Below, piece by piece: positions 1,692 through 60,110 of a DNA stretch of 64,000 nt. The translations under genes and the position numbers were made by a program. The notes beneath the pieces were generated by a model. It saw only the letters and a list, made by a program, of their open reading frames with translations. It was not told the DNA's origin and did no database searches. The DNA lies in sequence record MW248466.1. One strand, 5' to 3'. Position 1 is the stretch's first letter. Each line of letters opens with the position of its first letter.

Positions 1692-3001
1692 TGGCTAGAT
1701 TTTTACTTAAGAATAAAGACTTATCAAAATTACCAGTAGTAACTAATCATGAATCAATTGATAAGAAAGGTGATTTCACTGAAGACGGTATCTTCAGTGA
1801 GAAAATCTTTGGACCTGATTCAGATGTAGATAATATTACAAATGAAGCTATAGTTTATTTAGGCAATAACTATATTATTACACCTTTAGGATATGACAGA
1901 ATTAAAAAATTAATAGGTAGAAAAAGATTTGCTGAGATTATTAGTTCTGAAAAACCTATTGATGAAAACGGTAATGTAATTGAACCAGAAGATGACCATA
2001 ATTCATATATTGGATTAGTTGAATTTAAAAAGAACTTCTTAAAAATTCTTAAAGAAGAAGTTAAACGTGAGAAACGTAAAACTAAAGATTACAATAGAGT
2101 TGTTCAATGGTATTTAAATGGAACATTATTCCAAAATTATGTAACTGTATTTAGTCCTAAATTGAGACCAGCTACAGTTAATAAAGCTACTAAGACATTT
2201 AGACATTCAGAGATTAACAAAGAATTTAACTTGTTAATTGCTCATAGTAATAGTCTTAAAGAATTAGATGAACATTATACAGATGATTCAGTTGAACTAC
2301 AGAAATTAAACTTACTTAATAAAATTCAAGATGATAATATGAATATTTATGATCGTATTATTAATGAAAATATTAAAGGTAAAATGGGTACTATTCGTAA
2401 ATTAATTATGGGTAGTCGTGTAGGATATTCAGCTCGTTCAGTAATTGTTCCAGCTCCTGATTTAAAATTAAATGAAATTAGAATGAATTATACAATCTTC
2501 TTAGAAATATACAAACCACTATTAGCTAATTTAATGTATGTAACGGAAAATATTCCATTGCCTAAAGCAGAAGAAATATTAGGTAAAGCTTTAGATAACT
2601 TTAATCCTAAAGTATATAAATACATGAAAGAATTAGTTAACAAAACTGAAGGTGGTATGAGAGTAATTCTGAACAGGAATCCAAGTATCTCAGAGTCATC
2701 AGTTCAAATATTAAAAATTAAAGATATTATTAGTGATATTGATTCAGCTGTAGTAGGTATTAGTAATAATATACTTGCAGGAATGGGAGCAGACTATGAT
2801 GGCGACACATTGAATATTATAGCTCTCTTCTCAGAAGAGCAATATGATATGTTAAAAGTACAAGATCCAGTCAATCAATTAATATCATATAATGATGGTT
2901 TATTTAATAGAACTTATTCACTTAATAAAGACTCACAGATTGCAGTTTATTTATTAAATAATCCTAAATCAAAAGATGTAAGTATAAAAGCTAGTAAATA
3001 G
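1691..3001 (+). CDS. rpoC: Phage RNA polymerase beta'-like subunit (N-terminal/catalytic part)
   Basis: DGIFSEKIFGP, GKMGTIRKLIMGSRVGYSARSVIVP, ILNRNPSI and catalytic GADYDGD (2786-2806) match RpoC conserved regions. Confidence 0.93.
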   Translation: MARFLLKNKDLSKLPVVTNHESIDKKGDFTEDGIFSEKIFGPDSDVDNITNEAIVYLGNNYIITPLGYDRIKKLIGRKRFAEIISSEKPIDENGNVIEPEDDHNSYIGLVEFKKNFLKILKEEVKREKRKTKDYNRVVQWYLNGTLFQNYVTVFSPKLRPATVNKATKTFRHSEINKEFNLLIAHSNSLKELDEHYTDDSVELQKLNLLNKIQDDNMNIYDRIINENIKGKMGTIRKLIMGSRVGYSARSVIVPAPDLKLNEIRMNYTIFLEIYKPLLANLMYVTENIPLPKAEEILGKALDNFNPKVYKYMKELVNKTEGGMRVILNRNPSISESSVQILKIKDIISDIDSAVVGISNNILAGMGADYDGDTLNIIALFSEEQYDMLKVQDPVNQLISYNDGLFNRTYSLNKDSQIAVYLLNNPKSKDVSIKASK

Positions 3002-3008
3002 ATTTTTT

Positions 3009-3038
3009 AGAATAACGGTCTTATTAGATCGTTATTCT
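3009..3038 (+). terminator. Intrinsic terminator-like hairpin after the RNAP genes
   Basis: agaataacggtct/agatcgttattct inverted repeat just after the stop codon. Confidence 0.65.
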
Positions 3039-3054
3039 TATTATATAAATATGA

Positions 3055-3708
3055 TTGGAGACATTGACCATGAATAAAAGACAAGAAAAGAAATTAGAGA
3101 AGAAAAAATTAGAAGAACAAAGTAACGAAGAAATTATAGTTTTACCAAAATTAAAAGAAGAAAAGGATGAAGTTAAAATGAATAAAGAAGTCAAAGTTAA
3201 AAGAGAAGGGTCTTACAAGAAATTAACTAAGGAACAAGTACATTACATTGCAGAATTAATTGATAAAGGACACGGAAATAATTATATTTTAAAAGAACTT
3301 AAATCTAAGTTTGGTATTGATCGTAAATCACATTCAATTACACATATCAGACGTGGTGAACATCCTACATTTAAAGCACTTACAGATGATAATTATTACT
3401 TTGCTGAAGTAGGATATCCTACATTTAATGAATACAAAAAGATTTTACGTGGAGAAGTTAAACCTAAAAGTAAAACACGTGTAAAAGCTGAAGAAACGGT
3501 TAATAAAGTAAAAGAGTCACCAGTGGCAGAAAAAGTATCTAGTGTTACAGAAGAGAAAGTAGAACAAGTAAAAGAAAGAATGAGTAATATTCAAAAAGAT
3601 AAAGAAACTGGTAAAGAATATCGTGATGCAGATAGTATTCACAAAGCTGGTAAAACTCAAGAAACTATTTTTGATAAGATTTTCAAACGTATTTTAAATA
3701 TTTTATAA
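3055..3708 (+). CDS. Putative HTH DNA-binding protein
   Basis: KKLTKEQVHYIAELIDKG...KFGIDRKSHSITHIRRGE resembles phage HTH modules; charged low-complexity flanks. Confidence 0.5.
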   Translation: METLTMNKRQEKKLEKKKLEEQSNEEIIVLPKLKEEKDEVKMNKEVKVKREGSYKKLTKEQVHYIAELIDKGHGNNYILKELKSKFGIDRKSHSITHIRRGEHPTFKALTDDNYYFAEVGYPTFNEYKKILRGEVKPKSKTRVKAEETVNKVKESPVAEKVSSVTEEKVEQVKERMSNIQKDKETGKEYRDADSIHKAGKTQETIFDKIFKRILNIL

Positions 3709-56447: not shown

Positions 56448-57602
56448 ATGAATTTACAAGAAGAACAGCAATTAAATAAAATTAATAAAATAATGAATAT
56501 CAATGAAGATGCTTTTAATTTTAGTAAAAATACTTCATTATTAAGAGAAATAGATGAAGAATTTAAAACCTTATTAGATAGCTATAATTTTGATAAATCT
56601 GATTTTGATTTAATTGATAAATCTGAAATAAATAAAATAGCTACTAATATTTCTAAAATCACTAAAAAGCTATTTAATACTAATATGAAATTAAAATTCA
56701 TTGAAGCCGATCCTAAAGGAAAAGATAAATTTAGAGTAGACTCAGTTGCTTCTACAATGATATATCCAGAACAAATTAGGAATACAGTAGATGGAATTTC
56801 TAAGATAGTTATAGAGGAAAAGAATGGTATATATTATTCTAAACCTAGAGAAATTGAAGTATTTATGGAGTTATCATCTATCAGATACTTTTTAGAAATG
56901 AAAAAGAATTCTAAGAAAGTAGCTTTTTCTAATTTTAATGAAAGAGTTTGTACTTCAGTACTACTACATGAAATAGGTCATAATCTATTTTTACCTATTG
57001 AAATTAAAGTAATAACTCAAGGTAAAGAACCTGCTTTTGAGCTTAAGTATAAAGACAATAAACCGGTACAATTTCAATACACTAAGGATATAGAAGCTGA
57101 TACTGATAGAAATTTAAAATTGGCTGGTCCTATGATAATTTCTATGACAATAATGGTTGCTATTTTAACTTCATTAACAGGTGTAGCTTCTATAACTGGA
57201 ATTACTTCTATCTTTTCTTTCTTTAAATTAGGATCAATGGATAATAAAAGAGTAAAAAAAATGAATTATAATTTATCTGAAAGATCTGCCAATCAATTAC
57301 CTGCATTATATGGATATGCAAAAGAGAATATAGTGCTTTATGATATAGTTTATGCCGCAACTAATAGTAAAATGGAAAAAACTAAAAATAATATTTTCAG
57401 TAAAATATTTAGAGGATTAATGTATCCTAGTAGATTATTTATTAGAAATTATAAAGACTATACATCGGATTCTATTGACAATACTATTAAGACTCTTAAA
57501 TTTGAAATAAATAATCCTAATAATAGTAAAGAAGTTAAAGAAGGTTTAAAACAACAACTTTCTGATATTCAAACTTTAATGAAGAAATCAGATAACATGT
57601 AG
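56448..57602 (+). CDS. HExxH-containing head-module protein with a hydrophobic segment
   Basis: VLLHEIGH, downstream SERSANQLP, TM-like MIISMTIMVAILTSLTGV. Confidence 0.6.
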   Translation: MNLQEEQQLNKINKIMNINEDAFNFSKNTSLLREIDEEFKTLLDSYNFDKSDFDLIDKSEINKIATNISKITKKLFNTNMKLKFIEADPKGKDKFRVDSVASTMIYPEQIRNTVDGISKIVIEEKNGIYYSKPREIEVFMELSSIRYFLEMKKNSKKVAFSNFNERVCTSVLLHEIGHNLFLPIEIKVITQGKEPAFELKYKDNKPVQFQYTKDIEADTDRNLKLAGPMIISMTIMVAILTSLTGVASITGITSIFSFFKLGSMDNKRVKKMNYNLSERSANQLPALYGYAKENIVLYDIVYAATNSKMEKTKNNIFSKIFRGLMYPSRLFIRNYKDYTSDSIDNTIKTLKFEINNPNNSKEVKEGLKQQLSDIQTLMKKSDNM

Positions 57603-57626
57603 ATAAGAAAAGAGAGTTGAATAAAT

Positions 57627-60103
57627 ATGATTGCTAAACCAAAGTTAAAGAAAAAAGTGTATTATGATTATAAAACTAATAATATTAGTTTTTTAATAGT
57701 GGCTAGAGACCTTAAAAAGAACAACGTTAGAAATTATGGGATTCCATTAACTCTATACGATAAAAATCTTATAGGTGTAGATCCTTGGGATCCTGAAATT
57801 TCTGATGAAATGAAAACTCGTGTATTAAGAGAAGCTAAAATTAATATATGGTTTTATCTAAGGGAAGTTATAAGAGTTCCAGTTCCTGGTGGTAAAGTTA
57901 TGTATGAACTTCATAGAGGTAATATGGCTATGACGTTTTGTATGTTACACAATTTAGATACAGCGATAATGCTTCCACGTCAGCACTATAAAACATATTC
58001 AGCTGTATGTTATTATTCATGGATAATGTTATTAGTAGGTAGTAACTATACAATGCTATTTACTCATAAATCTTATTCAGATACTACTGAGAACTTAAAA
58101 CGTCTTAAAAATTTATTTAAAGAGAAATGTTTACCTGAATATGTATTAGCTAATTTTGGAGATAAAAATGATAGAGATAAGATTAATGAATTTCAATTAG
58201 CTAGTAATAACAATACTATTAAAACTGTTTCACCTCCGACTAACGGTGAGTCAGCTAACAAAGCAGGTTAATATCATGGCTTGCTATAAATCTTTTTAAT
58301 TGCTGGGACAAATTATTTAATTTAATCAGCATCACGTATGTGTTCAACGACTAAATAAAAGACAATTATAAAATTGAAGATATAGTCTAAAATAGCGTGG
58401 TTCTACTGTAAATAGTTGCAGTAGTAAAAGAATATTAATTGCTGGAAGAGATTATCATCTTAATCAGCATCACTAATTATAGTGTTCAACGACTAAATAT
58501 ATTCACTTATTTATATGAGTATGATATAGTCTGATCTATATTTAAACAAATATAGTTAACTTAATGACCTATGGTTTGGCTAGATGAGTGGGCTTTTATA
58601 CCTCACAACCAAACAATGTTTGAAGCAATGAGGCCTGAAATTAATGCGGGCTTATTTATTTAATTGCTGGAAAGTCTTTATTAAGATAATCAGCATCATT
58701 AAAATTAATGTTCAACGACTAAATAATAAATAGTATTAATATAATACTAAGATATAGTCTATTCTATATGGAATCCATGTAGTTAATATTAAAAGGCAGT
58801 CTCTACAGCATCAGCTATAGCTAAAAAGAATGGTACACCTTATGGCCTTCTTATCACCACAACACCGAGTACATTGGACGTACCTCAAGGACAGTTCTTC
58901 TTTGAACAAATGAATGATGCAGCTCAATGGACAGAAAAAATATATGATTATTACATTAATTCTGAAGAAGAAGGTAATGAAAAATTAGAAGAATACATGG
59001 AAAGTAATTCAGGTAATTCATTCATCTATATAGAATATTCATATAAAGAATTAGGTAAAGATGATGCTTGGTTAGAAAAACAAAAACGTCAAATTGGTTC
59101 TTTAGAAGCAGTTAAACGTGAAATTCTTCTTGAATGGGCATTTAGTAATGATGATTCATTATTTGATGAAGAACAAATGACGGAGTTATCATTATATGCA
59201 AATAAAGAGATATATAACACTATTGATTTTAAAATAAACAACAAAACGTATTACGTCCATATGGTTAAAAAGATGGAGAATATGCATGAAAAGAATTGGT
59301 TAGTTGGTATTGATATATCTGGTGGTCTTGGTCGAGATAATACTGCATTTACTGTAGTTGATCCGGGTACATTAGAACCAGTAATGGTTTTCCAAAATAA
59401 TATAATTAACGGACCTACTTTTAGAAAATTAATTAAAGAACTTATTACACTTTATATACCTAATGCAGTATTAATACCTGAACGTAACTATGCTGGTACA
59501 GTGATGATAGAAGATATGATTCAAACTGATGGTATTGGAGATAATATTTTTTATTCATTAAAGAATAGAACAGCAGAAAAACAAGTTGAAGTGAATAAGC
59601 AAGTATTTAATGAAATTCCTAGACATAGTACTAATAAAGTTACTAAACAAGTAAGAAGATATGGCATTGATACAACTAAAAAATCTCGTGATCTAATGCT
59701 TAATGAAATTTTATCAATGATCGTTGAAGAAAAGCCTTATCTAGTTAATAATAAACTATTATTCCAACAAATAAAATCTCTTCAAATGAAAAAAGGTAGA
59801 ATTGATCACCCTGATGGAGGACATGATGACTTACTCATGAGTTATTTATTCTGTTTATATGCATACTATTACGAAAAAGATATTAAAAAATTTGTTAAAG
59901 TTAAATACGGTTCAATGGTATCTGCAAGTGGAGAAAATGCAGAGGAAATTGAAAAAGAAAGACAAGCTAGAAGTAAAGATATTGCATCTATAAAACGTAT
60001 TGGAGGAATTATTGATGGTAATTCACCTACCAATCCTCTATTACAGAATAATAATTCATCCCCAGATCAAAAATCAAAAAGAATAATGAACTTATTAGAT
60101 TGA
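57627..60103 (+). CDS. terL: Terminase large subunit, spliced: join(57627-58268, 58396-58409, 58567-58636, 58796-60103), 677 aa
   Basis: Walker A-like PRQHYKT; splicing yields KAG|RGSTV|PMVWLDEWAF...RP|AVSTAS...LLITTTP; nuclease motifs VGIDISGG, ERN and DDLLMS; joined length 2034 nt is in frame. Confidence 0.92.
58269..58395 (+). ncRNA. Minimal group I intron 1 (127 nt)
   Basis: P1 with U58268.G58279, P10 ATCATG/CGTGGT in register, P/Q/R/S elements, P3 and P8 stems, terminal G; no P9. Confidence 0.88.
58410..58566 (+). ncRNA. Minimal group I intron 2 (157 nt)
   Basis: P1 CTACTGU/GCAGTAG, TTGCTGGAA, AATCAGCA, GTTCAACGACTA, TGATATAGTCT, P9 hairpin, terminal G. Confidence 0.88.
58637..58795 (+). 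ncRNA. Minimal group I intron 3 (159 nt)
   Basis: P1 AGGCCU/GGGCTT, P10 TGC/GCA, P/Q/R/S elements, P9 hairpin, terminal G. Confidence 0.88.
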
Positions 60104-60110
60104 TTGTACT

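Follow-up and report, generated by a model that had tools for sequence, protein, structure and literature searches.

How the large terminase subunit (TerL) of Staphylococcus phage MarsHill is encoded is a question that its genome record raises and that the paper describing the phage did not settle: two terL open reading frames (ORFs) were reported there, and the mature protein 'could not be confidently reconstructed'. MarsHill, a propagated isolate and a viable phage, is an AR9/PBS1-like jumbo phage with a genome of 267 kb and about 25% G+C. We analyzed nucleotides 1-64000 of its record MW248466.1 (hereafter, the window), in which terL lies at 57627-60103; a blastn search with 57600-60110 returned this record at 100% identity and with the same coordinates. 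GenBank places two 'terminase large subunit' coding sequences (CDS) there, at 57627-58271 and 58874-60103, and about 600 nt between them are unaccounted for. Comparisons of DNA, from which all our conclusions are drawn, indicate that MarsHill terL consists of four exons split by three mini group I introns, 127, 157 and 159 nt in length, none of which contains an ORF.

The four-exon terL gene of MarsHill

The exon boundaries could be fixed because S6, SA1 and DC4 have uninterrupted 677-aa TerL genes that read through the region (...SANKAG-RGSTV-PMVWLDEWAFIPHNQTMFEAMRP-AVSTAS...). The junctions were confirmed at the nucleotide level by PALS_2, whose terL is intron-free at all three sites and has the same nucleotides as the MarsHill exons (GCAGGT-CGTGGTTCTACTGT-ACCT). 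A first-pass annotation of the window had proposed a 14-nt micro-exon between two tandem introns, and this intron-less allele bears the proposal out. All features described here are on the plus strand. Exon 1 (57627-58268) comprises 214 codons, contains a Walker A-like PRQHYKT and ends in GCA GGT. It is followed by intron 1 (58269-58395), by exon 2 (CGTGGTTCTACTGT, 58396-58409), which encodes R215, G216, S217 and T218 and provides two nucleotides of V219, and by intron 2 (58410-58566). The 70-nt exon 3 (58567-58636), encoding (V)PMVWLDEWAFIPHNQTMFEAMRP with Walker B (LDE) inside, is separated by intron 3 (58637-58795) from exon 4 (58796-60103), which reads AVSTASAIAKKNG...TTTP and has 435 codons and a stop, with the C motif TTTP and the nuclease domain. 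Each 5′ exon ends in a U paired with a guide G, and each of the three introns ends in G. The joined exons amount to 2034 nt and 677 codons with a single terminal stop, and the product is identical to S6 TerL at 658/677 positions (97%) in a gap-free alignment. Exons 2 and 3 are absent from the GenBank annotation, the start of gp71 is an internal TTG at 58874, 26 codons inside exon 4, and a 30-aa ORF at 58571-58663 is exon 3 running on into intron 3. TerL remained unreconstructed in the describing paper because the exons of 14 and 70 nt, which hold the RG/Walker B centre, were unannotated.

The intron-less genes themselves come in two synonymous versions. In S6 and SA1 the region around exon 2 reads GGA AGA GGT AGT ACC GTT CCA, and in PALS_2 it reads GGT CGT GGT TCT ACT GTA CCT, as in the MarsHill exons, so that six of the seven codons differ silently. 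Precise intron loss, co-conversion or endonuclease-resistant target variants could each be reflected in this difference.

The part of TerL that the missing exons encode belongs to the ATPase centre. Comparison by phmmer with the gp17 structures 3ezk and 3cpe set AGRGSTV PMVWLDE opposite AVRGNSF AMIYIDE, with a whole-sequence E value of 0.0014 and weaker local scores. In this weak alignment, the RG of exon 2 falls on the conserved RG (VRGNS) that stands just before Walker B in T4-type gp17, which agrees with the RG motif that the first-pass annotation had assigned to the micro-exon, and TTTP falls on the TTT coupling motif of gp17. A Pfam search with the intact S6 TerL matched no family.

Translation of unspliced terL halts at codon 215, and Walker B is encoded in exon 3, beyond the reach of the two annotated ORFs. 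Since a viable phage with a single terL needs an intact TerL, we infer that the MarsHill introns are spliced in vivo. An artefactual or dead gene, in which the missing P9 of intron 1 (see below) is an assembly error, terL is a pseudogene, or the two ORFs make separate polypeptides, has next to no chance of being the explanation. The two TerL CDS in GenBank, and the fact that the authors did not reconstruct the mature protein, would fit it. However, an intron of identical length, 127 nt, occurs in an independent isolate, and the same intron is found in a metagenome contig; assembly error was therefore rejected. A second TerL locus was sought in MarsHill and none was found, which leaves one terL locus in a viable phage and disposes of a second gene copy. 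TerL split into two proteins was rejected since both annotated ORFs omit Walker B, while exons 2 and 3 encode this region in frame. A twintron was rejected as well, the 14 nt between introns 1 and 2 being coding and kept in every intron-less homologue. According to the MarsHill paper, these phages plaque and propagate poorly at 37 °C; it is pure speculation that such temperature sensitivity owes something to the very short, AU-rich helices of introns that interrupt essential genes.

Core architecture of the mini-introns

Three sets of the canonical group I elements P, Q, R and S (AATTGCTGG, AATCAGCATC, GTTCAACGACTAAAT and GATATAGTCT) are found at the locus, and a search of the 64-kb window gave exactly three R elements. 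The canonical core elements AAUUGCUGG, AAUCAGCA, GUUCAACGACUAAA and AAGAUAUAGUCU were found together with P3-P8 and the G-binding pair of P7, and all four of P, Q, R and S are the same in introns 1 and 2. A covariance model of the family, built from an alignment of 44 non-redundant members from which intron 1 was excluded, gave exactly three matches in the window: intron 2 with 100.2 bits, intron 3 with 95.6 and intron 1 with 86.9. Among the 44 members, compensatory changes were seen in P4 (11 GC-to-AU), in P6 (11-25 double changes per pair) and in P7. With a MAFFT alignment as input, RNAalifold gave P4, P6 and P7 and no other helix; P3, P5, P8 and P9 were misaligned through length variation.

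The Rfam model of group I introns (RF00028, Intron_gpI) was less sensitive. When a 751-nt slice was searched, intron 1 scored 47.0 bits (E 9e-11) and intron 3 scored 45.1 bits, both just below the gathering score of 50 bits, and intron 2 appeared as fragments only. Searches of the whole window, at the gathering threshold and also at E ≤ 0.001, reported none of the three. This shortfall is due to the absence of peripheral helices; the core is not at fault. The paper describing DC4 states that Rfam found no introns in that phage, which has little bearing here, as DC4 terL is uninterrupted.

When split at the conserved elements, 17 introns at the TerL loci of seven phages were found to share one minimal architecture: a P1 hairpin, P3, P4/P5, a short P6, P7 and a single P8 hairpin, with no P2 and no P7.1/P7.2. 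P9 ends the structure in all but MarsHill intron 1. In that intron, P3 is formed by 58291-58296/58357-58362, P4 by 58301-58306/58326-58331, P5 by 58310-58323, P6 by 58333-58342, P7 by 58349-58353/58383-58387 and P8 by 58363-58376; the minimum-free-energy fold recovers P1, P4-P5, P7 and P8. The P2 and P7.1/P7.2 helices of subgroup IA2 (Twort/SPO1 type) were looked for in the MarsHill introns and are absent: the gap between R and S is 22-26 nt and holds the one P8 hairpin, and the gap between the P1 guide and P3 is 5-13 nt. The core sequence of these introns resembles that of IA introns, with the helices that define IA2 missing.

The 5′ splice sites are equally uniform, each P1 having a U.G pair there. 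In intron 1, the last seven nucleotides of exon 1 (AGCAGGU, 58262-58268) pair with the guide GCUUGCU (58279-58285); in intron 2, CUACUGU (58403-58409) pairs with GCAGUAG (58418-58424); in intron 3, AGGCCU (58631-58636) pairs with GGGCUU (58648-58653). By inspection, P10 of intron 2 is CUAU/AUAG and that of intron 3 is GCA/UGC.

The missing P9 of intron 1 and the double use of the micro-exon

The S element of intron 1 (GATATAGTCT, 58379-58388) is followed only by AAAATAG (58389-58395), 7 nt that end in the terminal G at 58395. The first-pass annotation had read the 3′ end of the intron in the same way and had noted that no room is left for P9. In the other TerL-locus members, a hairpin of 7-8 bp begins 3-4 nt past S and is followed by a tail of 11-14 nt that ends in G; in MarsHill, such P9 hairpins are found at 58536-58555 in intron 2 and at 58764-58782 in intron 3, with tails at 58556-58566 and 58783-58795, respectively. 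Candidates for P9.0 were picked by inspection as the 2-3 nt after P7 that are usually able to pair just before the terminal G, and they covary (GAU/AAU, AUU/AAA, AAA/UUU, GU/AC). Introns 2 and 3 have the terminal G, P9 and a plausible 2-bp P9.0. Intron 1 has the terminal G, with neither P9 nor P9.0, and it also lacks P2.

Because P9 was misaligned in the MAFFT alignment, it was scored by a separate hairpin scan with random windows as a control. An exact-motif scan of IMG/VR yielded 79 loci, mostly on contigs of 200-400 kb, which together with the phage loci gave 75 distinct family cores. A hairpin of at least 5 bp that starts no more than 8 nt from S is present in 72 of the 75 cores. It reaches at least 7 bp in 58/75, compared with 8.9% of the random windows taken from these loci. 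The 72 cores have 42 different stems and about 40 different loops, a pattern indicating that in this family P9 is selected as a helix and that L9 makes no conserved contact. Three cores have no such hairpin: MarsHill intron 1, its copy in phage LY01, and an intron of IMG/VR contig L051 that has a P9 with a long loop. Hence, MarsHill intron 1, with its LY01 copy, is the sole P9-lacking type among the 75 cores, in keeping with what had been claimed for it.

The site of intron 1, between G214 and R215, is also occupied in two other phages: in Madawaska by an intron that has P9 and bears an endonuclease ORF of 1 kb in its P1 loop, and in AH12 by a 206-nt intron that has P9 as well and no intron 2 alongside. 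As these same-site introns bear P9, the P9-less state of MarsHill intron 1 is derived and arose by deletion.

Both ends of the micro-exon are put to use. Its nucleotides 1-6 (CGTGGT, 58396-58401) form the P10 of intron 1 by pairing 6/6 with ATCATG (58273-58278), a stretch that adjoins the P1 guide of this intron on the 5′ side, and its nucleotides 8-14 are the 5′ strand of intron 2 P1. By our own estimate, the chance of a 6/6 complement is of the order of 0.3%. Both pairings covary among the phage alleles. At site 1, P1 is AGCAGGT/GCTTGCT in MarsHill, AGCGGGT/GCTCGCT in AH12 and AGCCGGT/GCCGGCT in Madawaska, and P10 is CGTGGT/ATCATG, GAGGT/ACCTT and AGAGGT/GCCTTT, respectively; at site 2, P1 is CTACTGT/GCAGTAG in MarsHill and GCACCGT/GCAGTGC in Machias and PB50. 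Since the complement recurs in alleles of different sequence, the covariation is real, and the double use of exon 2 put forward in the first-pass annotation holds. The relatives at site 1 that bear P9 have the long P10 too; it is therefore older than the loss of P9. Madawaska shows the same tandem layout, in which its P9-bearing intron 1 precedes a 14-nt exon (AGAGGTAGTACTGT) and this exon precedes intron 2. At the level of sequence, we regard the exon-intron boundaries, the membership of the family, the loss of P9 and the covariation of P1 and P10 as demonstrated.

Given this structure, each MarsHill intron is probably spliced by the ordinary, independent group I pathway, intron 1 being a minimal form whose 3′ site would be set by the terminal G and P10. 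The gene would then carry three stripped-down introns of one family in the part that encodes the ATPase centre (at RG, at Walker B and on the approach to the C motif), each removed by two-step guanosine-initiated splicing to give the 677-aa TerL. Exon 2 would be the DNA left between two independent insertion sites, one between G214 and R215 and the other inside V219, and would be near the minimum length that can give 6 nt to intron 1 P10 and 7 nt to intron 2 P1. Intron 1 of MarsHill and LY01 would be a deletion derivative in which the P9 hairpin and the partner of P9.0 are gone and the full catalytic core (P3-P8, J8/7 and the G-binding P7) is retained. Two elements would choose its 3′ splice site: the terminal G, at a distance of 7 nt from P7, and the unusually long 6-bp P10, which may compensate for the lost P9 and P9.0, and the intron would splice unaided by intron 2. 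A 3′ site set by P10 would agree with what is said of laboratory sunY mini-ribozymes. It would also agree with a report that the second step survives the removal of P9.0 or P10 singly and is blocked by the removal of both (PMC11417360).

Several points weigh against this reading. The lack of P9 in a natural group I intron has been described as 'very unusual' and P9 as 'essential' (PMC3873408), and P9-less intron 1 was never found without a neighbouring intron 2, its known copies being those of MarsHill, LY01 and the IMG/VR contig L127. The helices of intron 1 are short and AU-rich, with a P6 of 3 bp, and the z-score of its fold is only -1.4, so that its unaided folding may be poor. In the predicted fold, AUCACGU (58331-58337, the 5′ side of Q/P6) pairs over 7 bp with GCGUGGU (58395-58401), that is, the terminal G and the start of exon 2, and so rivals P10; this alternative arises because the P10 guide AUCAUG and AUCACGU are near-identical. 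In LY01, one pair of the alternative helix is lost (CACA for CACG).

The P1 hairpin of intron 2 (58403-58424) had been suggested in the first-pass annotation to stand in for the missing P9, so that intron 1 would splice only when intron 2 is present and in an obligatory order. We consider this very unlikely, even though the hairpin, with 7-9 bp, matches the P9 stems of the family in size and the three sequences with a P9-less intron 1 all have intron 2 beside it. The external supply of a missing P9 also has a parallel in the trans-spliced rnl intron of the alga Prasinoderma, modelled without P9, whose role is speculated there to be taken over by a factor or by a further piece of RNA (PMC3873408); unlike that fragmented intron, MarsHill intron 1 is contiguous and has known P9-bearing relatives at its own site. 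The topology, however, contradicts such a substitution. P9 and P9.0 work by placing a G downstream of themselves, whereas the terminal G of intron 1 is upstream of the hairpin, which therefore cannot deliver it. Moreover, the hairpin starts 15 nt past the 3′ strand of P7 (GTC of the S element), compared with 0-7 nt in the 72 relatives, and with L9 unconserved there is no specific contact to replace. Madawaska keeps P9 despite the same tandem layout, and the AH12 intron at site 1 has P9 in the absence of intron 2. The association of the P9-less intron 1 with intron 2 is explained by physical linkage, as far as these sequences go: linkage suffices because the three sequences share one lineage and the two elements are 14 nt apart.

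It is also possible, though doubtful, that intron 1 is crippled and needs an RNA chaperone or splicing factor of the host or the phage, or that it forms a hybrid ribozyme with the S element of intron 2; the efficiency of splicing would then limit and possibly time TerL production. In the hybrid version, the 5′ half of intron 1 would pair with the identical S of intron 2 and exon 2 would be skipped, giving a truncated product of 220 aa. The identity of the P, Q, R and S elements of the two introns and the weak predicted fold of intron 1 favour this explanation, as does the fact that some phage introns splice in vivo and not in vitro. In addition, exon skipping between similar adjacent introns is documented for Twort orf142 (23-nt exon; PMC10136302) and SIOphi (PMC11878797). 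On the other hand, skipping of exon 2, as the first-pass annotation had foreseen, shifts the frame (...KAGTYGLAR*, with the stop at codon 221), hence it cannot be the productive route; there is no sign of regulation in what we examined, and the conservation of intron 1 (see below) suggests that it works. Thus, some skipping of exon 2 is plausible by the precedents of Twort (23-nt exon), Coxiella (34-nt exon) and SIOphi and from the shared elements, but a regulatory role for it, such as the switch on packaging raised in the first-pass annotation, would be speculation.

Finally, introns 1 and 2 could form a cooperative two-ribozyme unit in which intron 1 is unable to finish splicing alone. This is quite unlikely; such a unit may act via a hybrid core or via the composite helix that the adjacent P10 and P1 would make on the 14-nt exon. 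If it exists, the introns would have to be spliced in a fixed order, the proportions of full-length and frameshifted TerL could be tuned, and the two would be a natural case of group I introns that depend on each other.

Persistence of the introns and their known counterparts

Independent splicing of intron 1, which we favour, raises the matter of how an intron without an endonuclease persists. No endonuclease ORF is present within the MarsHill introns (127-159 nt), and same-site relatives do carry homing-endonuclease ORFs: in intron 1 of Madawaska and in intron 2 of Machias, PB50 and L127, where the ORF is placed after the R element. Intron 1 most likely hitch-hikes with the homing endonuclease of intron 2 and persists through co-conversion during intron 2 homing. 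With the two introns only 14 nt apart, this would be the simplest explanation both for the survival of an intron 1 that has no ORF and for its invariable pairing with intron 2. Between MarsHill (Texas, USA) and LY01 (China), intron 1 is identical at 125/127 positions and the flanking exons at 90-94%; this conservation suggests a functional intron. A 17-nt pattern for the P9-less end matched 74 metagenome loci, nearly all of them chance matches without an R element, and only L127 (Ga0079226_10131909, 1-230) proved to be a true third copy, with the same 14-nt exon. There, the P9-less intron 1 adjoins an intron 2 that still carries a homing-endonuclease ORF, like intron 2 of Machias.

Across ten related phages, terL introns are found at S209/A210, G214/R215, V219, P242/A243, P266/S267 and near residue 540, and in Machias and PB50 the counterpart of the P242/A243 intron sits inside R241. 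Homing elements typically cluster on catalytic motifs in this way. In these two phages (L006:2753-2923 and L007:2762-2932), the frame demands the junctions ATGAG/T...AAATG/ACCAGC (AGA = R241), which puts G, not U, last in the exon; a shift of the site by one nucleotide downstream would allow a P1 containing U.G (GATGAGT/GGCTC-CATC). In LY01, a fourth mini-intron (L004:1761-1921) interrupts terL after the CCT codon of TTTP, with a 5′ half nearly identical to that of intron 3 (the same GGGCTT guide and a target ending in GCCT), and introns at the TTTP site are also present in PALS_2, Machias and AH12. After residue ~540, LY01 has in addition a large insertion (L004, about 2740-3240) with a different group I core, GTTCAACGACTATCG. 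Outside terL, the same mini-intron family forms tandem arrays in IMG/VR jumbo contigs (L014, L028, L046, L051, L015, L027, L020 and L030), where it interrupts the gene for RNA polymerase beta′ around the catalytic motif NADFDGD. The exons inferred there are about 12, 22 and 26 nt long (e.g., ACACTTTCCCAT and TGATGGTGATACTGTTTCTATT), with provisional boundaries; the 12-nt one, ACACTTTCCCAT, lies between two family members.

Several group I introns in one phage gene, short exons between introns, exon skipping, split terL genes and small introns in jumbo phages are already known. The Twort introns of Landthaler and Shub (1999) are said to be roughly 100 nt longer than those of MarsHill, and their R and S core sequences are presumably closely similar. 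According to two reports, Twort orf142 contains three self-splicing group I introns, two of them highly similar across a very short exon, and undergoes exon skipping (PMC10136302, PMC11878797). The likeness to MarsHill is that of a Staphylococcus phage gene with three group I introns (I1-I3 in orf142, a late gene). The differences are that the exon is 14 nt long here and 23 nt there, that the gene is terL, and that the MarsHill introns, whose splicing is predicted, have no P2 or P7.1/P7.2 and in one case no P9. [quoted passage not shown] The mean intron length given for Bastillevirinae is 802 nt (PMC11878797), compared with 127-159 nt in MarsHill, and these descriptions, as far as available, mention no P9-less member or 14-nt exon (PMC11878797, PMC12880540). 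An even shorter exon, of 1 nt, lies between group IB introns of mitochondrial cox1 in placozoans and has RNA-seq support (PMC5436844). Like it, exon 2 is too short for ORF or BLAST searches and separates two independent group I introns; unlike it, exon 2 is in a phage, is fully consumed by P10 and P1, and is predicted from DNA. The closest parallels to the truncation of intron 1 are engineered. In the sunY mini-ribozymes, the subject of P9.0/P10 deletion work attributed to Doudna and Szostak (1989) and Michel et al. (1990), a core without the 3′ terminal domain is reportedly active and P10 alone can reportedly specify the 3′ splice site. These truncations were made in the laboratory, whereas that of MarsHill is natural and located in an essential gene.

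What is new here is thus a matter of degree: by sequence, a natural 127-nt intron without P2, P9 and P9.0, and a solved four-exon terL of MarsHill, whose structure, left open by the describing paper, is now resolved. The Azoarcus intron, of ~205 nt, is usually cited as the smallest group I intron. Intron 1, at 127 nt, would be well below this size, and no smaller natural group I intron is known to us. If intron 1 splices, it would be a natural minimal group I ribozyme of 127 nt with no P2, P9, P9.0 or peripheral helices, useful for the engineering of minimal ribozymes and circular RNAs and for asking what P9 does. Screening based on Rfam at curated thresholds would miss introns of this kind, and the mini-intron family is probably under-annotated in jumbo phages. 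MarsHill terL itself offers a compact natural system for the study of how two ribozymes share a 14-nt exon.

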